Positions 28,236 through 39,009 of a stretch of 42,600 nucleotides of DNA are shown here, piece after piece. Origin of the DNA: Vitrella brassicaformis CCMP3155 (Eukaryota; Protista; Chromerida); NCBI GenBank assembly GCA_001179505.1, contig CDMY01000614.1:1-42600 (forward strand), in the 5' to 3' direction. The position numbers and the translations under genes are program-made. Under the pieces are notes generated by a model. It saw only the letters and a program-made list of their open reading frames with translations. It searched no databases and was not told where the DNA came from. The first letter of the stretch is position 1. The number at the start of each line of letters is the position of its first letter.

Positions 28236-28491
28236 TGGGTGGCAACAGATCGATGGGATGGGTGGTGGACCAGGTGGAGCGGTGAATCGCTTTCTTGTGT
28301 GCTGTTTGTGGTGCATAGCTCTGCGGACCGTGCATGCACCTCTGCTGGCTTGACTTTCGATGTTCGGAAATCGACCAAAGCTCGCAGCTGCGATTGCGAA
28401 AAGAAACCATCGCGAGGCAGAACCGAAGCCTCCGGACAGATCAGCGGTGCAGCAACAAGCCCAAGGTCTGATCTCATCAACTCTCGCCATC

Positions 28492-30350
28492 ATGCTGTTG
28501 CTCCTGCTTTCCTGGCAGAGCCTGCTGTCCACTGGTGGAGCGCTCGTCAGACATGTCCAGAGTGGCTTCGTCCCCCTACAGCCGCCTCGGCGTCGTTTGC
28601 GTCCATCCCGACTCATCCCAGCTGCCGAGAAGGGACAGGGCGGTGCGTCTGTGTCGACGACAGTGAGCCGCGAGAGGGCCGCCAGAGTGGTCGACGCCGC
28701 CCTTTGCTACCTCAAGCTGCATGAAACACCCAAAAGCTTCGTTTCGGGGTTGAGCGACCTCGTTCCATCCCTCATTTCTCGCGGCAATACCACCACTCAA
28801 TGGTCTGTTCAGCCGGACTTTCAGCTGTCGGGAGCGCCATTCTCGCCACCCGACCTTCAAGCCGTCTATGAGATGCACGCCAGCCAGTCCCCCTTTGGCC
28901 TGAAAGACCAGACAATTGTCGATCCAGATGTGCGCAACAGCCGGGAATTGTCAGCCGACCAAGTGCGCCTGAGCAGTCGGGACGGCCGGTGGGAGAATGT
29001 GATTGAGGGAATCTGCCGTACGGTGGAGGAGGAGATGACGCCGGGCTATCGAGTGACAGCGGATTTCTACAAAACCCTTATCTATGCGGAGGGCGACCAC
29101 TTCCGCGTCCACAAGGACACGCAGCGCACCGCAGAGATGTTTGGCTCACTGTTGCTCTTCCTCCCATCTGACTACAAAGGCGGAGACTTCCTGCTCTACG
29201 ATGGGGACCAATTCCATGGCGAACGCTTCAACAACGAGACGCGAGCAGCTCTCGAGAGCGGGCAGTGTCGGTGGCTGGCCTTCTTGGCTGACATCCCTCA
29301 TCGCGTGATGCCCGTTGAGTCGGGCCATCGACTCGTGCTGGCTTACAACCTGCGGCGGGAGAAATTGGCAGAGCCCCAGAGAGGAAGGCCTGCCCCGCTG
29401 GCCGCACCGCTGCAAGATCTGGTCGATATGCTCACCGACTACTTCACGTCGACCGGCGAGGAGACACAAGGGGACAGAGAGGTAAGCGGCCATGCAGTGA
29501 GTGCACATGAGAAGAGCATGTGAGTGATGGCTGCTGTCCCTCTGTGCTTTGGGCCGTGTTGTGTTTGCAGAAGGAGAGTGCCAGGCGGTTCGTCTTTTTG
29601 CTCGATCACGACTACACGCCTTCGTCAATCGGGCCTGACTACCTCAAAGGTGCCGACAGCGCCTTGTATCAGGTGCTGGCACAGCACTTCAACGTCAGCT
29701 TTGAGATGCTCAATGAGTTCGTCTCATTCGACGACCCCGCTCAATACTCGCTGATCGACAATGAGACTGACGCGGCGGTTCTGCGGGCAGGCACGGCCAA
29801 CATCACAGACGAAGAGAAGGCCCAGGTATTTGGACCTTACTGGGAGACCGAGTTCTTCGATGAAAATGAGTTCTGCGAGTTCTTCGATCACTTGACATGG
29901 TACGAATACCGGGACAGTCCAGAGTCGAAGCACTGTGATTATGAATACTTGAAAGACGAGTATTTGAAAATGTCCGAAGAAGAGAAGCAAAAATGGAGAC
30001 AAAGGGCCATCGCCAGACGGAAGGAAAAGGCCATCGCCGATTGGCGTTCTTCTCTCGCTGACGGGCAAGCGTCTCGGGTAGGTGTGCTCACTCACGCACT
30101 CTCACGTCACTACAACCTGTTGTCTCTCTGTTGTGTGTGTCAGTGGGGCGACGATGATTGGGTCAACCTGATGGACCGCATTCGAGAGAAGGCATCGAGC
30201 AACGACGTCGACTTTGTCTTCCCGGTGCGGAAGCCCGGACAGTCCGCCTTCGCGAAGAAGCCACATGTCATGTGGGGAGGAAACCAGGAAGCCAACTGGG
30301 AGTATCAGTACATTTCCGTGTGTCTCCTTGTGAGCGGGCTGAGAGAGTGA
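28492..30350 (+). CDS. 2-oxoglutarate/Fe(II)-dependent dioxygenase (prolyl-4-hydroxylase-like fold) with signal peptide and transit-like leader; 3 exons
   Basis: SPFGLKDQTIVDPDVRNSREL; FYKTLIYAEGDHFRVHKDTQRTAEMFGSLLLFLPSDYKGGDF (HxD); WLAFLADIPHRVMPVESGHRLVLAYNL (distal H and R); C-terminal FLLDHDYT...LKGAD. Introns are ~29481-29570 and ~30079-30143. An alternative upstream ATG lies at 28360. Confidence 0.87.
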
Positions 30351-31465: not shown

Positions 31466-31991
31466 CGTGCCGACGTCGATAGCTATCTATCTGTCTTATC
31501 TTCCGACCGGCAGCGCAGCCAAATACAAAGGGCTCTTGTACCTTGTCTTGTACTAACACTCGACGAACGCCAAAGCAGTACTGCTTTCCCGAAGATGGAT
31601 GTTGTGGTGGAAGCTCGTCAGAGGAGTAGAAGCATCAACTTCCACATCCACTTCTCACTCCAGCCCGCGGCCCATCTACCTGTAGCTCGCACTTGATGGA
31701 GAGTATTGGAGTGTTGTATTGAGGGGTACTGATGGCGTGTGGCCATCCCCCTGTTACCGTTGTTCCTCATTTGAGCCTCGGCTGACTTCGGACGAGCGTC
31801 TCTGGGCCATCCAGCGCTGAGAGAGGGCCGGAGAACAGCTGAGAGGACACTCGTACCTGCTGGGGCATCTGGGCCTTCCTCTCTGCCACCCCTCTACGAT
31901 TGCTTTGGTCTGCCTGAGTGAGGCTGGTTGCCGTTCTGCACCATCCATCCGCCATCCATTCCATCGACGACGGCGTGCACGCAGATGAGTC
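31466..31991. promoter_or_regulatory. Probable bidirectional promoter (I78 inhibitor / MATH-RING gene)
   Basis: Divergent ATGs about 525 bp apart. The inhibitor appears to have a 5' UTR intron (~31483-31541). Confidence 0.45.
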
Positions 31992-32632
31992 ATGAACTTC
32001 CTGAAGCCCATATTCCAGATCTTCCAAGAGTATGCGGAGCTGCCGCCCCTGCTCGACAATGAGATTCAGTTTGTGGTCAAGAAGTGGCGGGACACACGGC
32101 CGTGCCAGCCGCTGAGGGGCCCCTCCAAGCGGATCAAGTCCTTCTTTAACTGCAGGCTACTCGTCTTCCCGCAAGGTACGTAGATGAGAGAGAGAAGGAG
32201 GCAGGCCAGCCAGGCGCTGAACGGCTTTGGGATCATCTGCTGCCTTCGTGTGTTATATGTCATATGTGTGTGGATTGATGGTTTCGTTGGTTGCAGGGAG
32301 TCAGTCGTCGATTGACAACGTTGGTGTGTTCCTCGAGGTGGTGCCTGAGAACTATCCCCAGCACTGGTGCTTCCCATCCGTCAAATGCGAAATCACGGTC
32401 GGTCCCTCAGGCACAAACAGCAGCTGTCCGGCCTAGTGTCGCTCACTTTTCTGTCTTTGCTGTATTGTATGTTTGCCCTCTCTGCAGGTAGTGAACTTTC
32501 ACCAGTACGAGGAGTCCCTCCGCAAGTCTGCCACCCTGTCGTTCAGCTCCCAAGTCCTCACCGCCGGTATGCACACGCATACACGCCAACACACATACAT
32601 CTCCCCCCCCCGATGGAGGACCACCTCCCATC

Positions 32633-32664
<32 letters not shown>

Positions 32665-35600
32665 TCAGGCAGCAGCACGTTCATCCCGATATCGACCGTC
32701 AAGGACCCCGAGCGCGGCTTCCTCAGCCACGACGGTGCGCTGGTGGTGCGTGCGTCGGTGGAGCTGCCGGCGGTCGACCTGCACCTGGTGGACTTCGGCT
32801 CCCGGCAGGGGCAGGGCGCCAGCGCCCTCTACCATGAGCTGGGGCACGTCTGGGACAGCGAGATACGGATGGTCATCAAGAAGTGGCACTCACTCTCGCC
32901 GCAGGTACGTCAGACAGACAGAAAAGTCGTTTGCGTGTGCGCCTTCTGATCATCCATTCATTGTGTTGGGTGTGTGTGTCCAATCCACTGCATACAGGTT
33001 CCGCTGGCGACCCCCTGCAAGAAGATGCGTCAGTGCACGTTCCGACTGCTGGTGTACCCCAAGGGCACCGAGCGATTCCCATCGCACGTGGGGGCGTTCC
33101 TGGAGATCATCCCCACGTCGGACCTGCAGCCCTCCTGGTGCTTCAACCTCAAGTACGCCATCACCATCGAGAACTTCCTCCTCGGCCCCAATGGCAACCT
33201 CTCCAAGAACGACACGTACGCCTTCTGCGAGACGGCCACCGACAGGGGCTGGGCCGACCTCATCCACTTCGAGGTCCTCACCACCGAAACCGGATTCCTC
33301 TCGTCGGATGGGTCGCTCTCCGTCAAGCTGACCATCCTCGAGCAGCCCAAGATGTCCCGGCTGCGGGGGCCGCCGGGTGCCACTGCGCCAGGTGCGCCAT
33401 TGGCCCAGCAGCAGGCGGCGCAGGAAGCTTTGCGTCTCGAGGAGCAGCGGCAGCAGCAGGAGCAGAGGGAGAGGGAGCGGCAGATGGCGCTCGAGAATGC
33501 GGCCACGTCGGGCATGTCGACGGGCCGGTCGGCTGCCACGCCGCTGGGGCAGTGCCGGGCTGACGAGTGCCGTAACCTGCAGGGGCCGTCGGTGTGGCTG
33601 ACCGACGAGCGGGTCGTGTGCGAGTAAGCACACACACACTTACACACACACAGAGGAGGAAGGGGGCAACGGGGGGCTGTGGTCATTTATCCTCATTTAT
33701 CCGTGGGGTGCCATATGTATGTGTCTGTGCAGGTGCAGCGAGCACTGCAAGATCTACTACCACGCTTCCTGTTTCAAGAAGCTGGCCAAGGCCATCGCAT
33801 CCGACCTCGAGGACCACATTTGCCTCACCCCAGACTGCGACGGCACCCTCTTCCGCGTCAACCTCATCGACAGCGACGGCCGGCTCGTCCGCAAGTACAT
33901 CGACGACGAGGCCATCCTGCAGGAGATCAGGCGCAAGAAGCAGCAGCAGGCCGACCAGCGGTCGAACCCTGAGACCCCACCCGCCGTCGACATCCCCGAG
34001 CACTCCCGAGGCCGCAACACCCACGCCCACGCCCACGCCCACACGCGCAAGGGCAGGAACTCAGAACCAGAGAGGGGCGGAGACAAGGATGCCAACACCA
34101 AGGCCGACGAGCGAGCAAGACGCGCCAACAGCTCACAGTCGTCCCACCCTGCCCCTGCCCCTGCCCCAGCAGCGGCAGTAGCTGCAGCTGCAGCTGCAGC
34201 AGCCGACCCCTACCCCGCGCCCACCGAGCCCACCACAAGAGGTGCCCGAGCGCCCAGGCACTCTGACGAGCAGCCAGCCAGCTCGTCTGCTGCTGCGGCG
34301 GCGGCTGCCGGCCCATCGGTGGCGAGCAAGAGAAGTGACGATGCCGATGGACCGTCACGGCCGGCATGGCAGGGGCAGCGGCGAGGCATCCTGGACCTCT
34401 CGAGGAGCCGTGAGGGTCTGTCGATGATTGAGGCGCTGCAGCAGTCCTCATCGGGTCACACGAGCGGTGACGAGCGGGACAAGCGCGGGGAAGAGGGCGA
34501 GGAAGATGAGGATAATGACGGTGACGATGAGGAGGACAACGTGACGTCGGATCGATACCGGTCGAGAGGCAGCGACTCGCCCTCTGCGTCGGCACAGACG
34601 CCTCGGTCGACCTCTGTGGGGTCGGAGCAGATGTGGGGACTGATTGAGGGGGAGCATGGCGACAGGGATGGGGAGGCTATGTCATCGCTGGCTGGGGGCA
34701 TCTTCCTTCGCAAGTAAGTGGGAAGGTGCAGTCGAGATAAGCGACGGCAGACAAACGCACGGGTGCTTCCTTCCATGATGTGTGTGGATTTCAGGGACGC
34801 CGATCCTGACGGCATGCGCATTCGGGGTGAGCACGCCAACGCGTCAGCGGCCGAGCGACGGCGCAAGCCCCATGGCAAAGGCAAGCAGGGCAAGGTGACC
34901 CTCAGCCTCTCCGAGTTCCACCAGCAGGTGCAGAGCCACCCTGCGCCTCCGCCCCCACCGCCCCCGCCCCCAGACTACTCCAACATACTGCGGCAGACGT
35001 CCACCAACACCAGGAGAGGCCCGGGGCAGCTGACCGCACCGTCGGCTCTGCCGCCCCCACCCCCACCCGCCCCTCTGACCATTGCCAGGAGGCTGCCGGT
35101 GACGCCCACCGTCACAAGGGCTCCCATGAGAGGGCGGGGGATACACACGGGAGGGGGCCTGGTGCCTCTGGGAGGGCCGGCAGCTGCTGCAGCTGCTGCA
35201 GCTGCTGGTGTGCCCAATCCGGTCATCCCCCCGCAGCCCTTCTCGCACGAGTTCCCCAAGCTGGCTGGGCAGCCGGGCTCGCGTATTGGTAGTGGTCTTG
35301 GTCTCCCTCTCCCCTCGTCCATGTCAATGGCGGCATCGTCTGCTGCAGCCCCGCCACCCCCGGGCAGCTCCCCGTCGCTCGGGTTCATGGAGTGTCCCCC
35401 ACCGCCTCCTGGCCCGCCCCCACAGGAGGCCTTGTCATCCATGTCCTCAATGCCCTCTCCCCCATCAGCGCGCCCGAGGCATGAGTTCCGCATCTTGACC
35501 AACACGAACCGGCGCGCCAATGCCACTTCGTCACCCAGCGCATCGCCACCCAGCGGCCCTGCACCCCCACCGCCAGCGGCGGCAGTTGCAGCTGCAGCCG

Positions 35601-38600
35601 TTGCTGCCGCAGCAGAGAGCATCCCGAGCTCGCCTCCCCCGCCCCCATCATCCTCTCAGTCGCTGGGCGAGGCGAGCGACGGGCCGCAAACGTATGATGA
35701 GGCGCCATTGTGCCCCGCTCCTTGTTCTCCAGCTCCTGCTGCTGCAGCTGCCGCCGCTGCCGCCGCTGCTGAGGTGCCGTTGTCGGTCATCGAGGAGAGG
35801 GAGAGGGCAATATCTTCCCCGCTCCCTCCACCAAGTGGTCCATCGGCACCATTGTCGGGTGGTACGTCAGAGTCGCCCGGCCTGGCGCGCTCTCTGACGG
35901 AGGACGAACGGGACGACGGCAGAGGCGGCGAGGCGGAGGAGCAGGAATCGGAGGAAGAGCTGGATCTGAGGGTGACGGAGGACCAGCTGGTGGAGACGAA
36001 CGAGCTCTCCCTCGGTAGGGGGCCCACCCGCGGGCTGTCGGCGTTCGACCTCGTGTGCAGCATCTGTCAGTGCAATGTGGTCTACCGCCCTCGGGTGACC
36101 CGGTGCTACCATCTCTTCTGCGGCGAGTGCATCGCACAGTGGTTCGAGAAGCACAACCCCACGCAGTTCGAGGGTGGCGGGTTCAAGTCGTTCCTCCAGG
36201 CCGCCAAGAAGAGCACCCAGGACGCCTCGCTGCGGCGCACTGCCCCCTGCCCCATTTGCATGCGGCAGCTCGTCTACAACAAGGACCTTGTCTCCCTCTT
36301 TCCCACCAACAAGGCCGTCCTCCGGTCAGACAGCCAGCTGCGCCGCTTCGTGGAGCGCATCAACAACCTCCACATTCGGTGCAAGCACCACGAGCGAGGG
36401 TGCAGCTGGCAGGGGCGGCATGCCGACTACCCCGCCCATCTGGAGCAGTGCGTGACCAACCAGCGGGACATGAGGAGGCGCCGAGCCGGTGCTTCTCCCT
36501 CCCCTCCCCCACAACCACCCCGTGTGCCGTCTCCTGTCCCACCCCCCAGTTCCCCCGGCCCTCCAGAACCCCCCACGCCCCATGCTGCTGTCGCGGCTCC
36601 GTCGGCCACCGTGGCGGCCGGCAGGAGACGGAAGGACAAGCGGAAGGCCACAGAGGAGATCCGGATCGGCCCGTTGCCCCGCTGCCCAGCGCCCAGTCCA
36701 CAGCAGATTGCCGCTCTGTACGGGCTGCCGCTGGGAAGATCGACGAGGGACAGTGGGATGGAGGCCTCCTTCACGGGCGGGGGCAGCGAGCGGCTTGGCC
36801 CGACTCTGTCGTTGTCGCTCGCCCCGTCTGTGGGGTCCACCTCTGCGTCGCCGGCGTTGTTTCCTGGTGGCGGCAATCGCACCACGCTCTCAGCCAGCTC
36901 CAAGGCCTTCCAGCCGTCGGGCTTCCTCTCCATGGACAACACGGAGGTGTCTGCGAGTGGCTGCCCCTCACCGGCACCCACACCCGTCCCCACCGCCATC
37001 AATGCCAAGAAGCCGGGAGGGCTCGTGCACATCAACGCGCCACGCAGATCACGCAGACCGGAGCCACGACCCAGCACTGCCCACCAGGGGCTGTCGGCAG
37101 GGCCACCCCCTCCTCCCCCTCCCTCGATTGGCACCCCGGCACTCTCGTCTGTGGGCCCGCCTGAACGCGACGACTTGCCCCCCGACAGCCTGTTGTCCAA
37201 GATCATCTTCACTCGGTCGCCATCGCCGTCGGTCGTGTCGCCGGGAGCCACTTCTGCGGCCATCTCCGACTCGGCGGTCGTGCCACCACCCCCTCCACCA
37301 TCTGAAGACGGCTCTCGCGCGCACGGACCGCTGCTCATCTCTTCTCTGGTGCCTGCTCCTACATCGACGCCTGCACCAACGAGCTTCCCCGGCCAGCTCA
37401 ATCCCATGGCGCCTGAGTTCATCCCGATGGGATTCAAGCCATCTGGGCAGGGCTTCAGGCAGGAGGGGCCGTCTGGTGGTGGGCGGGGCAAGGGGCACGA
37501 TCCGGCCGATGGGGAGAGGGCGAAGAGCTCGGGTGACCTGAGGTCGACCCTTGACTGCGGCAGAGTCCGCAGCCCCTCACCACCCGCATCGCAGCCTGGC
37601 AGAACCCTGCGGCCATCGTCGCTCTCCCTGGCGGTGCATGACCCCCTTGACGACCCGCCGTCACATCGCGGGGCTGAGGGCGCCTCTGATGTCGGCTCGG
37701 CATCGGACGACGTGGGGGCGAAAGACCACCTCGTCCCTCGCGAGCTCATGAAGATGCTGGATGGGGAGCAGCCCTCGGGCTCCGCCACCTTCCCGTCCTC
37801 TTCGTCGGCCGCCCCTGACGTCCCATCGCAGGCTGCTGACCACCTGGCGTCTCTCCCCTTCCTCCCCGTCACACCCGACCGCACCCACAGCCGCTCAAGC
37901 AGCCCACAGGGCGGCACAGGCGACCTCTTCTCCACCAGCAGCCCGGCGGCTCCCCTCACTACTCCGGGGTTCTCGCAAGGCGGCGGTGCAGACGAGGCGG
38001 CCGGCTCTGCAGCGATGAAGGGGCCTGTGCCTTTTGCTGGCCTGACGGGCCTCTGTGTGGCGGCTGCAGCAGCGGCAGGGCAGAGCAGCATTCCGTCTGA
38101 TGACGTCGAGTCGAATATGGATGCCCCCAGCGACCCGCAGATTGCCACGGACGAGGCGAGATCAGCGTCGCCCGAACCGGCTCCTGCGTCGCCGCCAGGG
38201 CCACCGCCGTTCGGGGAGGGAAGGGGTGACCATGAGTCGACCCCGCAGACGCCTGCAGTGGCGTCTGACAAGCCTCGTGGTCTGACTGCGGCAGAGATGG
38301 CGACAGTGCGGCGTCTGATTGATTTGATGGCGAGGAGCGAGGAGGACTGTGAAGGGCTGGAGGAGTCGATTCGGGCACTGGTGGACCAGCTGGGTGAGCA
38401 AGACGCGACACGCAAGACACGAATGCCGTTGTTTCCATTCACTGTGATCTGTCTGGCCATCCATCCCTTCATCCATCAGGTGAGGGCCGGCAGGAGCTGC
38501 GTCAGCACCGCCAGCGGCTCTGCCGCATCCGGGACGGCGAACAGCCCATGACGCAGGACAATCTCCCCTCGAACACGTCGGGCTCACTCTCATCGGCATC

Positions 38601-39009
38601 GCAGCCAAACCAGGCCGACATCCACGCGATCCCCTTCCCCTCACTCACCGCCCCCACACTCGCCAGTGCCCCGGCGCCATTATCGGGCGGTGAAGACGAC
38701 CCCTCACGCCCACCTGAATGCACCGCTGCCCCTCTCCAGCAGCAGCAGGAAGGGCAGGAACTCGACAGAGGGGACAACGGCGACACTAATGACGGGAGGG
38801 AGAGGGACGCTAGTGGTGGGTCGGTGATGCCTGCCGTTGGGACCGTGCAGCGGCTTGAGTCGAACGCCTTGCAGCTGTCGGAGACACTGACGAGGCTTCG
38901 AGTGCTGCTGGATGGGCTGCCCAACAGCAGCGACGTTCTCAGTGGGTGCTTGGGAGGCGATGGCGATGGCGAGCAGAAGGCCGGGGACGATACGAAGGAC
39001 CGGGACTGA
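31992..39009 (+). CDS. Large putative E3 ubiquitin ligase: MATH + MATH + TTC3/DZIP3-like Cys/His domain + disordered region + RING-HC + TRAF/SIAH-type Zn finger + PAM2-like motifs + C-terminal coiled coil
   Basis: MATH1 (CRLLVFPQG...VGVFLEV...FIPISTVKDPERGFLSHDGALVVRASV) and MATH2 (FRLLVYPKG...VGAFLEI...DRGWADLI...GFLSSDGSLSVKLTI). Cys domain CRADEC...CECSEHCKIYYHASCFKKL...CLTPDCDG. RING CSIC...CYHLFCGEC...CPIC. Zn finger IRCKHHERGCSWQG...HLEQC. Phase-compatible introns lead to the stop at 39009. The start codon is less certain. Confidence 0.88.

Follow-up and report, generated by a model that had tools for sequence, protein, structure and literature searches.

TTC3 and DZIP3 (the latter also known as hRUL138) are animal E3 ubiquitin ligases that carry the domain PF19179 (TTC3_DZIP3_dom). 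Both human carriers are linked to disease, namely TTC3 (Down-syndrome region, Akt turnover) and DZIP3. To our knowledge, PF19179 has neither an assigned function nor a solved structure. In a 2013 survey of HEPN domains, the DZIP3 fusions are listed with only a 'Zn-ribbon', and the family is called mainly animal (PMC3710099). Human TTC3 has also been named among the proteins with a PAM2 motif (PMC7356810, figure 1; PMC12898128). The present analysis concerns a stretch of 42,600 nucleotides from the chromerid alga Vitrella brassicaformis CCMP3155 (assembly GCA_001179505.1, contig CDMY01000614.1, positions 1 to 42,600), referred to as the window. A gene on its forward strand encodes a putative zinc module of the TTC3/DZIP3 type, which adds to this known domain family a new member in a new lineage and in a new architecture.

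The zinc module and its splice junction

The zinc module comprises residues 384-464 of a protein of 2,111 amino acids and lies at window positions 33547-33898, across intron 5. Its parts, with the predicted ligands and hairpin, are the following.

33547..33623, + strand: 3' end of exon 5, N-terminal part of the zinc module; G384 to C408 and two bases of E409; first ligand pair C386-x4-C391
33624-33732, + strand: intron 5; 109 nucleotides, GT..AG, phase 2; interrupts the zinc module two residues ahead of the CSEHC motif
33733..33898, + strand: 5' part of exon 6, remainder of the zinc module; E409 (last base)/C410 to K464; ligands C410, C414, H419, C422, C439 and C444; terminal beta-hairpin TLFRVNLIDSDGRLVRK
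33899..33961, + strand: basic K/Q/R-rich stretch directly 3' of the domain; IDDEAILQEIRRKKQQQADQR

Pfam itself was run on the translation of exon 6 alone, which matches PF19179 with 35 bits (E=1.3e-8, profile positions 58-113 of 116), above the curated gathering cut-off (GA) of 26.9 bits. The runner-up family is PHD_NSD with E=0.19. The spliced segment was scored against our own family hidden Markov models (HMMs), for which only members other than the window had been used, and obtained 48.5-48.8 bits over residues 379/384-464; the maximum among 2,000 shuffles of this segment was 11 bits, compared with 48.5 observed. The part encoded by exon 5 (CRADEC...) aligns with the first Cys pair of the family. 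When 60 amino acids of exon 6 were compared by phmmer with 1.84 billion representative proteins, seven matches at E<=1e-3 were returned. Two are false matches driven by repeats. The other five belong to PF19179, with E=1.6e-7 to a PF19179 protein, and comprise spider TTC3 (Trichonephila and Stegodyphus) and three proteins without a name.

The family signature C-x4-C...C-x3-C-x4-H-x2-C...C-x4-C occurs exactly once per member, with the first Cys pair also conserved. All invariant columns of the family alignment A4 (C, C, H, C, C, TPDC, G) are kept in the window, and its predicted ligands are present in full (8/8) as C386-x4-C391-x18-C410-x3-C414-x4-H419-x2-C422-x16-C439-x4-C444. Three further residues of the window, C408, H413 and H437, are not conserved in the family. 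Judged from the alignment, the conserved core of the domain is about 80 residues long with eight putative ligands, and their spacing is C4HC3, similar to that of a PHD finger. Outside the ligands, the window also contains the family motifs CSE[HQ]C, YHxxC[WFY][KR] and C.TPDC.G and the hydrophobic terminal hairpin.

A first AlphaFold 2 (AF2) model of the family (P0001, 10 alignment rows) had a predicted local distance difference test (pLDDT) score of 68 and a disordered first Cys pair. It is superseded by a trimmed model of spider TTC3 residues 602-692, based on 13 rows including exon 6 of the window, with a pLDDT of 95.3 and a predicted template-modelling score (pTM) of 0.84. This model consists of short strands, a hairpin, a helix after H-x2-C, a short helix and the terminal beta-hairpin, and it resembles the ESM-Atlas models of chordate DZIP3 with a template-modelling (TM) score of 0.83. 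Foldseek against the PDB gave no match at E<=0.001 for either model, and a sequence search of the PDB gave no significant match. Among the weak neighbours in solved structures (Z <=3.8), RING and ZZ cross-brace fingers stand out, namely the UBR4 hemiRING, Ubr1, Nbr1 ZZ, HERC2 ZZ, Mind bomb, KCMF1, Rad5, Slx1, TRAF5/6, RNF4 and APC11. The domain is most likely a distinct two-zinc cross-brace finger of the RING/ZZ/PHD kind with an appended hairpin. As no solved structure resembles the model strongly, this reading rests on the ligand spacing and the weak neighbours. For the zinc-binding topology that the original prediction wished to define with AlphaFold and Foldseek, a confident family fold was obtained on the spider homologue and no close solved relative; the topology stays a predicted one.

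The C4HC3 ligand pattern is also that of PHD fingers, which raises the question whether the segment is an ordinary PHD or RING-type finger that resembles TTC3/DZIP3 by convergence or chance. Weak Pfam matches point in the same direction, as PHD_NSD does for the window, and the second-best matches of family members are PHD- or RING-like throughout (zf-HC5HC2H, PHD, zf-RING-like); the PDB search further yielded a weak alignment to the ORTHRUS2 PHD finger (E=1.3). However, the match to PF19179 is stronger than that to any PHD family by seven orders of magnitude and exceeds the curated cut-off, and the non-ligand motifs CSEHC, YHxxC[WF]KK and CLTPDC[DE]G and the hairpin pattern are common to the window and the family. 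Furthermore, the Cys pairs are spaced by four residues, compared with two in PHD or RING fingers, and solved PHD/RING fingers reach a Z of at most 3.8. An ordinary finger is therefore very improbable. The original prediction of a TTC3/DZIP3-type Cys/His domain agrees with both the Pfam match and the score of the spliced segment, and a short K/Q/R-rich stretch lies directly behind the domain, where a K/Q-rich helix had been proposed. Taken jointly, the assignment of the segment as a genuine PF19179 member and the ligase context of its host protein described below are held with good confidence on the basis of sequence.

The sequence of the stretch 33553-33900 agrees with its earlier description to the base, and the intron that had been placed at about 33624-33732 is indeed removed. 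Exon 5 ends at 33623 (...GTG TGC GA/gtaagc) and exon 6 begins at 33733 (...tgtgcag/G TGC AGC). The joined exons encode CRADECRNLQGPSVWLTDERVVCECSEHCKIYYHASCFKKLAKAIASDLEDHICLTPDCDGTLFRVNLIDSDG, followed by ...RLVRKYIDDEAILQEIRRKKQQQADQ, or in abbreviated form CRADEC...VVCECSEHCKIYYHASCFKKL...HICLTPDCDGTLFRVNLIDSDG and then RLVRKYIDDEAILQEIRRKKQQQADQ. A contig of 1,760 nucleotides from run X3 (record 9, depth 80) joins 32995-33623 directly to 33733-34194 and also aligns to 31920-32173, 32295-32396 and 32674-32901, with further junctions at 32175/32297, 32397/32488 and 32904/32998. A second X3 contig contains the junction 34713/34795. Unspliced DNA is present in the runs X1 and X4, which share their sample with X3. 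The contigs of X5, which stems from a different study, stop near 33617 or begin at 33733, consistent with the splice. This evidence consists of assembled contigs of public runs, not raw reads, with no run recorded as RNA, so it shows that the spliced form exists and not how abundant it is. The gene is spliced and expressed, and its model is as follows.

31992..39009, + strand: whole gene; 8 exons, 2,111 codons, no internal stop, all introns GT..AG
31992-32175, + strand: exon 1
32297-32397, + strand: exon 2
32488-32566, + strand: exon 3
32669-32904, + strand: exon 4
32998-33623, + strand: exon 5
33733-34713, + strand: exon 6
34795-38393, + strand: exon 7
38480-39009, + strand: exon 8

The junctions of introns 1, 2, 4, 5 and 6 are supported by contigs, and all agree with this model; the comparison covered the flanks of intron 3 in part, and the region compared stops short of intron 7. 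The G+C content of 59.7% and the intron lengths of 81-121 nucleotides would fit a non-animal protist. Given the type of runs and contigs available, the gene model could in principle be an artefact, with the two halves of the module belonging to separate transcripts or with intron 5 retained, so that the domain would never be made. Against this stand the single X3 contig that spans five exon junctions including 33623/33733 at canonical GT..AG borders, with its sister runs unspliced, the identical splice that fits the X5 contigs of a separate study, and a frame that is open across 2,111 codons. The probability of such an artefact is practically negligible.

Two further observations were made on the contigs. 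One X5 contig lacks 20 nucleotides at 34212 and skips 34281-34401 (121 nucleotides with GC..TC ends) in the Ala/Ser-rich disordered region. The gaps at 34212-34402 may reflect a difference between strains, a low-complexity repeat that collapsed during assembly, or splicing at non-canonical sites. In addition, a short contig found in all four runs (214 nucleotides in X1 and X4) matches 32038-32101 with three differences and is joined to 31955, and the piece that it skips includes the start codon. It probably represents a related copy elsewhere in the genome, since the long X3 transcript contig is continuous over 31955-32038.

Architecture and proposed role of the host protein

From the N- to the C-terminus, the protein contains two MATH domains, the zinc module, a disordered region, a split RING, a TRAF-like finger, a PAM2 motif and a helical/coiled-coil C-terminus. 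The features outside the zinc module are located as follows.

32061..33339, + strand: tandem MATH domains; MATH1 32061-32814, MATH2 32860-33339; introns in both
36056..36271, + strand: split C3HC4 RING; CSICQ...CYHLFCGEC, an insert of about 40 amino acids, CPIC; zf-C3HC4 with 24.3 bits (GA 21)
36374..36457, + strand: TRAF-type-like finger; C-x6-C-x11-H-x3-C, CKHHERGCSWQGRHADYPAHLEQC; pattern read from the sequence, no Pfam match
37391..37435, + strand: PAM2 motif; GQLNPMAPEFIPMGF (LNPMAPEFIP); PF07145 with 25.2 bits (GA 20), E=1.1e-5; outside globular domains

MATH2 matches the Pfam MATH family with 23.5 bits (GA 21.2), and MATH1 and MATH2 form an internal repeat with 37% identity (E=1e-22). 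Between the zinc module and the RING lie about 690 residues of low complexity. Pfam scans of the exon translations detected no TPR, wHTH_TTC3, TTC3 helical domains, HEPN_DZIP3 or C-terminal RING-H2, whereas the TTC3-specific domains of spider TTC3 proteins are all detected by Pfam. As the domains specific to TTC3 and DZIP3 are absent, the host protein is, by its domain content, not an orthologue of either. The different domain context and the association with E3 ligases and translation, both part of the original prediction, thus hold at the level of sequence, and the PAM2 match above the Pfam cut-off strengthens the link to translation.

On the most likely reading, the host protein would be a RING ubiquitin ligase, docked on poly(A)-binding protein (PABP) through its PAM2 motif and supplied with substrates by its MATH domains. 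In the proposed mechanism, the tandem MATH domains would select peptide substrates, while the split RING together with the TRAF-like finger would recruit the E2. The PAM2 motif is predicted to dock the ligase on the MLLE domain of PABP and hence on messenger ribonucleoproteins (mRNPs), and the C-terminal coiled coil may mediate oligomerisation. The zinc module would serve as a non-catalytic binding module of the E3 ubiquitin ligase. Its partner on the mRNP, bound jointly with the adjacent basic stretch, might be a protein or an RNA, which is a guess; this specific role of the module is tentative and rather doubtful.

Several points weigh against this reading of the module and its host. The module lacks positions 1 to about 25 of the PF19179 profile, which in animal proteins form the LIKECENPP helix, and its match begins at HMM position 23. 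A protein from a metagenomic contig (P0005, see below) likewise lacks the N-terminal segment (profile 28-112), so not every member of the family has this segment. The basic tail is short, with 18% K+R compared with 27-40% over 60 residues in the animal members. The RING is split by its insert, Pfam matches its first half alone, and the scores fall just above or below various cut-offs. Exhaustive structural alignment against solved structures reached a best Z of 3.8, and we infer the fold of the module in the window from a homologue of 32% identity, the modelled spider TTC3. Finally, no paper naming the PF19179 domain was found in a literature search, and the functional role is conjecture.

Upstream of the gene, the window contains an open reading frame (ORF) at 28360-29523, encoding 387 amino acids with a 2OG-Fe(II) oxygenase domain (PF13640, E=1.5e-8). 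An identical product is encoded on a Logan contig of run ERR558200.

Distribution and origin of the domain

Outside animals and the window, the domain was met in two settings. The first is P0005, a protein of 279 amino acids with a C-terminal PF19179 domain, encoded at L001:2252-3091 (Logan contig, SRR8569139). The contig is compact, intron-less and of 40% G+C, and also carries paralogous leucine-rich repeat (LRR)/F-box genes and an epidermal growth factor (EGF)-rich membrane protein. The LRR/F-box neighbour of P0005 resembles Nucleocytoviricota clusters only (0.94-0.96), and the contig probably belongs to a giant virus that carries the domain. The second setting is Pandoravirus. Nine Pandoravirus proteins of 480-960 amino acids in BFVD match the family model m0b2065093174 at probability 1.00 and look like a paralogous family. 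In UniProt, two of the nine already bear the name 'E3 ubiquitin-protein ligase TTC3/DZIP3 domain-containing protein'. A literature search found no paper with PF19179 or DUF5861 and none pairing Pandoravirus with TTC3. A 69-amino-acid PF19179 fragment (P0002) is of unassigned origin.

All that the metagenome scan returned were exons of animal type and genes resembling TTC3 that have TPR and RING-H2. In the animal-like genomic copies (L006, L007, L008, L011, L012, L013; 40-46% G+C), introns stand after ...DFK and before DVLN.NCLTPDC, and the intron of the window, just ahead of CSEHC, is not at these positions. The scans of viral contigs found no relative, nor did the scan of prokaryote genomes. 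One viral-contig match (L015) was rejected as a chance run of nine residues (PDCDGTLFR) in a 15-residue alignment to an unrelated GC-rich ORF. No second cellular non-animal member was found, in searches that are insensitive to divergent protist members. Word-indexed protein searches returned nothing for exon 6 with region 1-75 or for the RING region of the large exon, and only other spiders for spider TTC3 575-700; they are uninformative on distribution, as they depend on exact 5-mer words and restrict protein length to windows. A tree of 13 domains has long branches and no resolved branching, and names no donor. The domain of the window sits on a long branch with 23-38% identity to all other members and is nested in no group.

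By its sequence relatives, the domain is not restricted to animals. The original prediction had gone further and regarded it as ancient rather than an animal innovation. Pandoravirus and the giant-virus-like contig support the part that concerns animals; antiquity is not demonstrated, with a single cellular non-animal member and an unresolved tree. Wide cataloguing in protists, which would have spoken against the idea, was not encountered: no other protist member turned up, although divergent ones could escape the searches, and it is viral members that are already labelled.

The domain could instead have been acquired by horizontal transfer, with either a giant virus or an animal (the coral host, for example) as the source, and grafted into a resident MATH-RING gene. 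Such a transfer competes with great age of the domain in this lineage and not with its identity. It would account for the patchy distribution, as the search of 1.84e9 representatives gave only animal TTC3-like proteins, two unassigned fragments and P0005, and as no other protist member turned up. The compact, intron-less contig of P0005 with its Nucleocytoviricota-like neighbour and the nine Pandoravirus proteins with the fold, two of them bearing the TTC3/DZIP3 name, would provide possible sources. However, the long branch of the window domain, its low identity and its lack of nesting imply that any transfer is old. The domain is also interrupted by a host-type intron that is not at the animal positions (after ...DFK, before DVLN.NC), the absence from other protists is not established by searches of this sensitivity, and the co-occurrence of PAM2 and RING as in TTC3 is easier to explain by shared ancestry of a cassette, with convergence as a further possibility. 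Transfer is a serious possibility that we hold to be somewhat less than probable. As the alga supplies the only cellular member found outside animals, and as the tree gives no resolved branching and places the window on a long branch, transfer and vertical antiquity cannot be distinguished.

A broader proposal is that the zinc module, PAM2 and RING form an old cassette of PABP-tethered ligases that predates the split of alveolates and animals. The N-terminal heads would have been added later (TPR/HEPN in animals, MATH in the alga), and giant viruses would have captured the zinc module. This proposal is decidedly unlikely as a whole. If it were true, the conserved element that recognises some feature of the mRNP would be PF19179, whose role could then be examined in a unicellular system. 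Independently of it, the module occurs outside the setting of animal biology, and the recurrence of RING and PAM2 suggests PABP-bound mRNPs as the common context. The novelty is lowered by the giant-virus proteins already labelled with the domain in databases, and the gain is limited by these labels, by inheritance and transfer both being possible, and by a conjectural function.

Comparison with known systems

With the RING, ZZ and PHD cross-brace fingers, the module of the window shares eight Cys/His ligands, and its C-x3-C-x4-H-x2-C core has PHD spacing. It differs from them in its outer Cys pairs (x4) and its added beta-hairpin, and no PHD or RING model of Pfam matches the module significantly. 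At the level of the whole protein, the E3 ligases of the TRAF/SPOP type with a MATH domain likewise combine MATH, RING and a TRAF-type finger in a single chain. The order is reversed with respect to the TRAF family, as the two MATH domains of the window are N-terminal and the RING lies far downstream. We know of no PF19179 or PAM2 elements in TRAFs.

The Pandoravirus proteins (UniProt S4VSV8, A0A0B5JAQ2 and their BFVD paralogues) have the same fold with a Foldseek probability of 1.00 and a TM score by query of 0.5-0.7, in a comparison made with the family model. They are viral proteins of 480-960 amino acids, and their domains are 16-26% identical to that of the spider.

The PF19179 family itself is the closest counterpart of the module. 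The window scores above the family cut-off and shares the eight ligand columns, the motifs, the terminal hairpin, the basic stretch and a RING in the same protein. It differs in having a loop four residues shorter from the first Cys pair to CSEHC, in its 23-38% identity to other members and in the non-animal organism.

Among described proteins, animal TTC3 offers the most extensive parallel to the host protein. In the spider proteins P0004 and P0007 and the metatranscriptome sequences L002 and L004, the zinc module, PAM2 and RING are set in long disordered and coiled-coil regions, as in the window. A PAM2-like LNPDA[RKQ]EY.P lies downstream of the zinc module in all full-length spider TTC3 proteins (7/7; e.g. 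P0004:1002, P0007:417), and a TTC3-like protein of the metatranscriptome has LNPNASVFNP (L004, ORF residue 832). In the window, no TPR, wHTH_TTC3 (PF24812) or TTC3 helical domains (PF24525, PF24905) were found, and the N-terminus is formed by tandem MATH domains, unlike that of animal TTC3. The RING of the window is a split C3HC4 in the middle of the protein, accompanied by the TRAF-like finger, whereas that of animal TTC3 is a C-terminal RING-H2; correspondingly, PAM2 stands downstream of the RING in the window and upstream of it in animal TTC3. Judging from the elements that they share, both proteins would presumably act as ubiquitin ligases on PABP-bound mRNPs.

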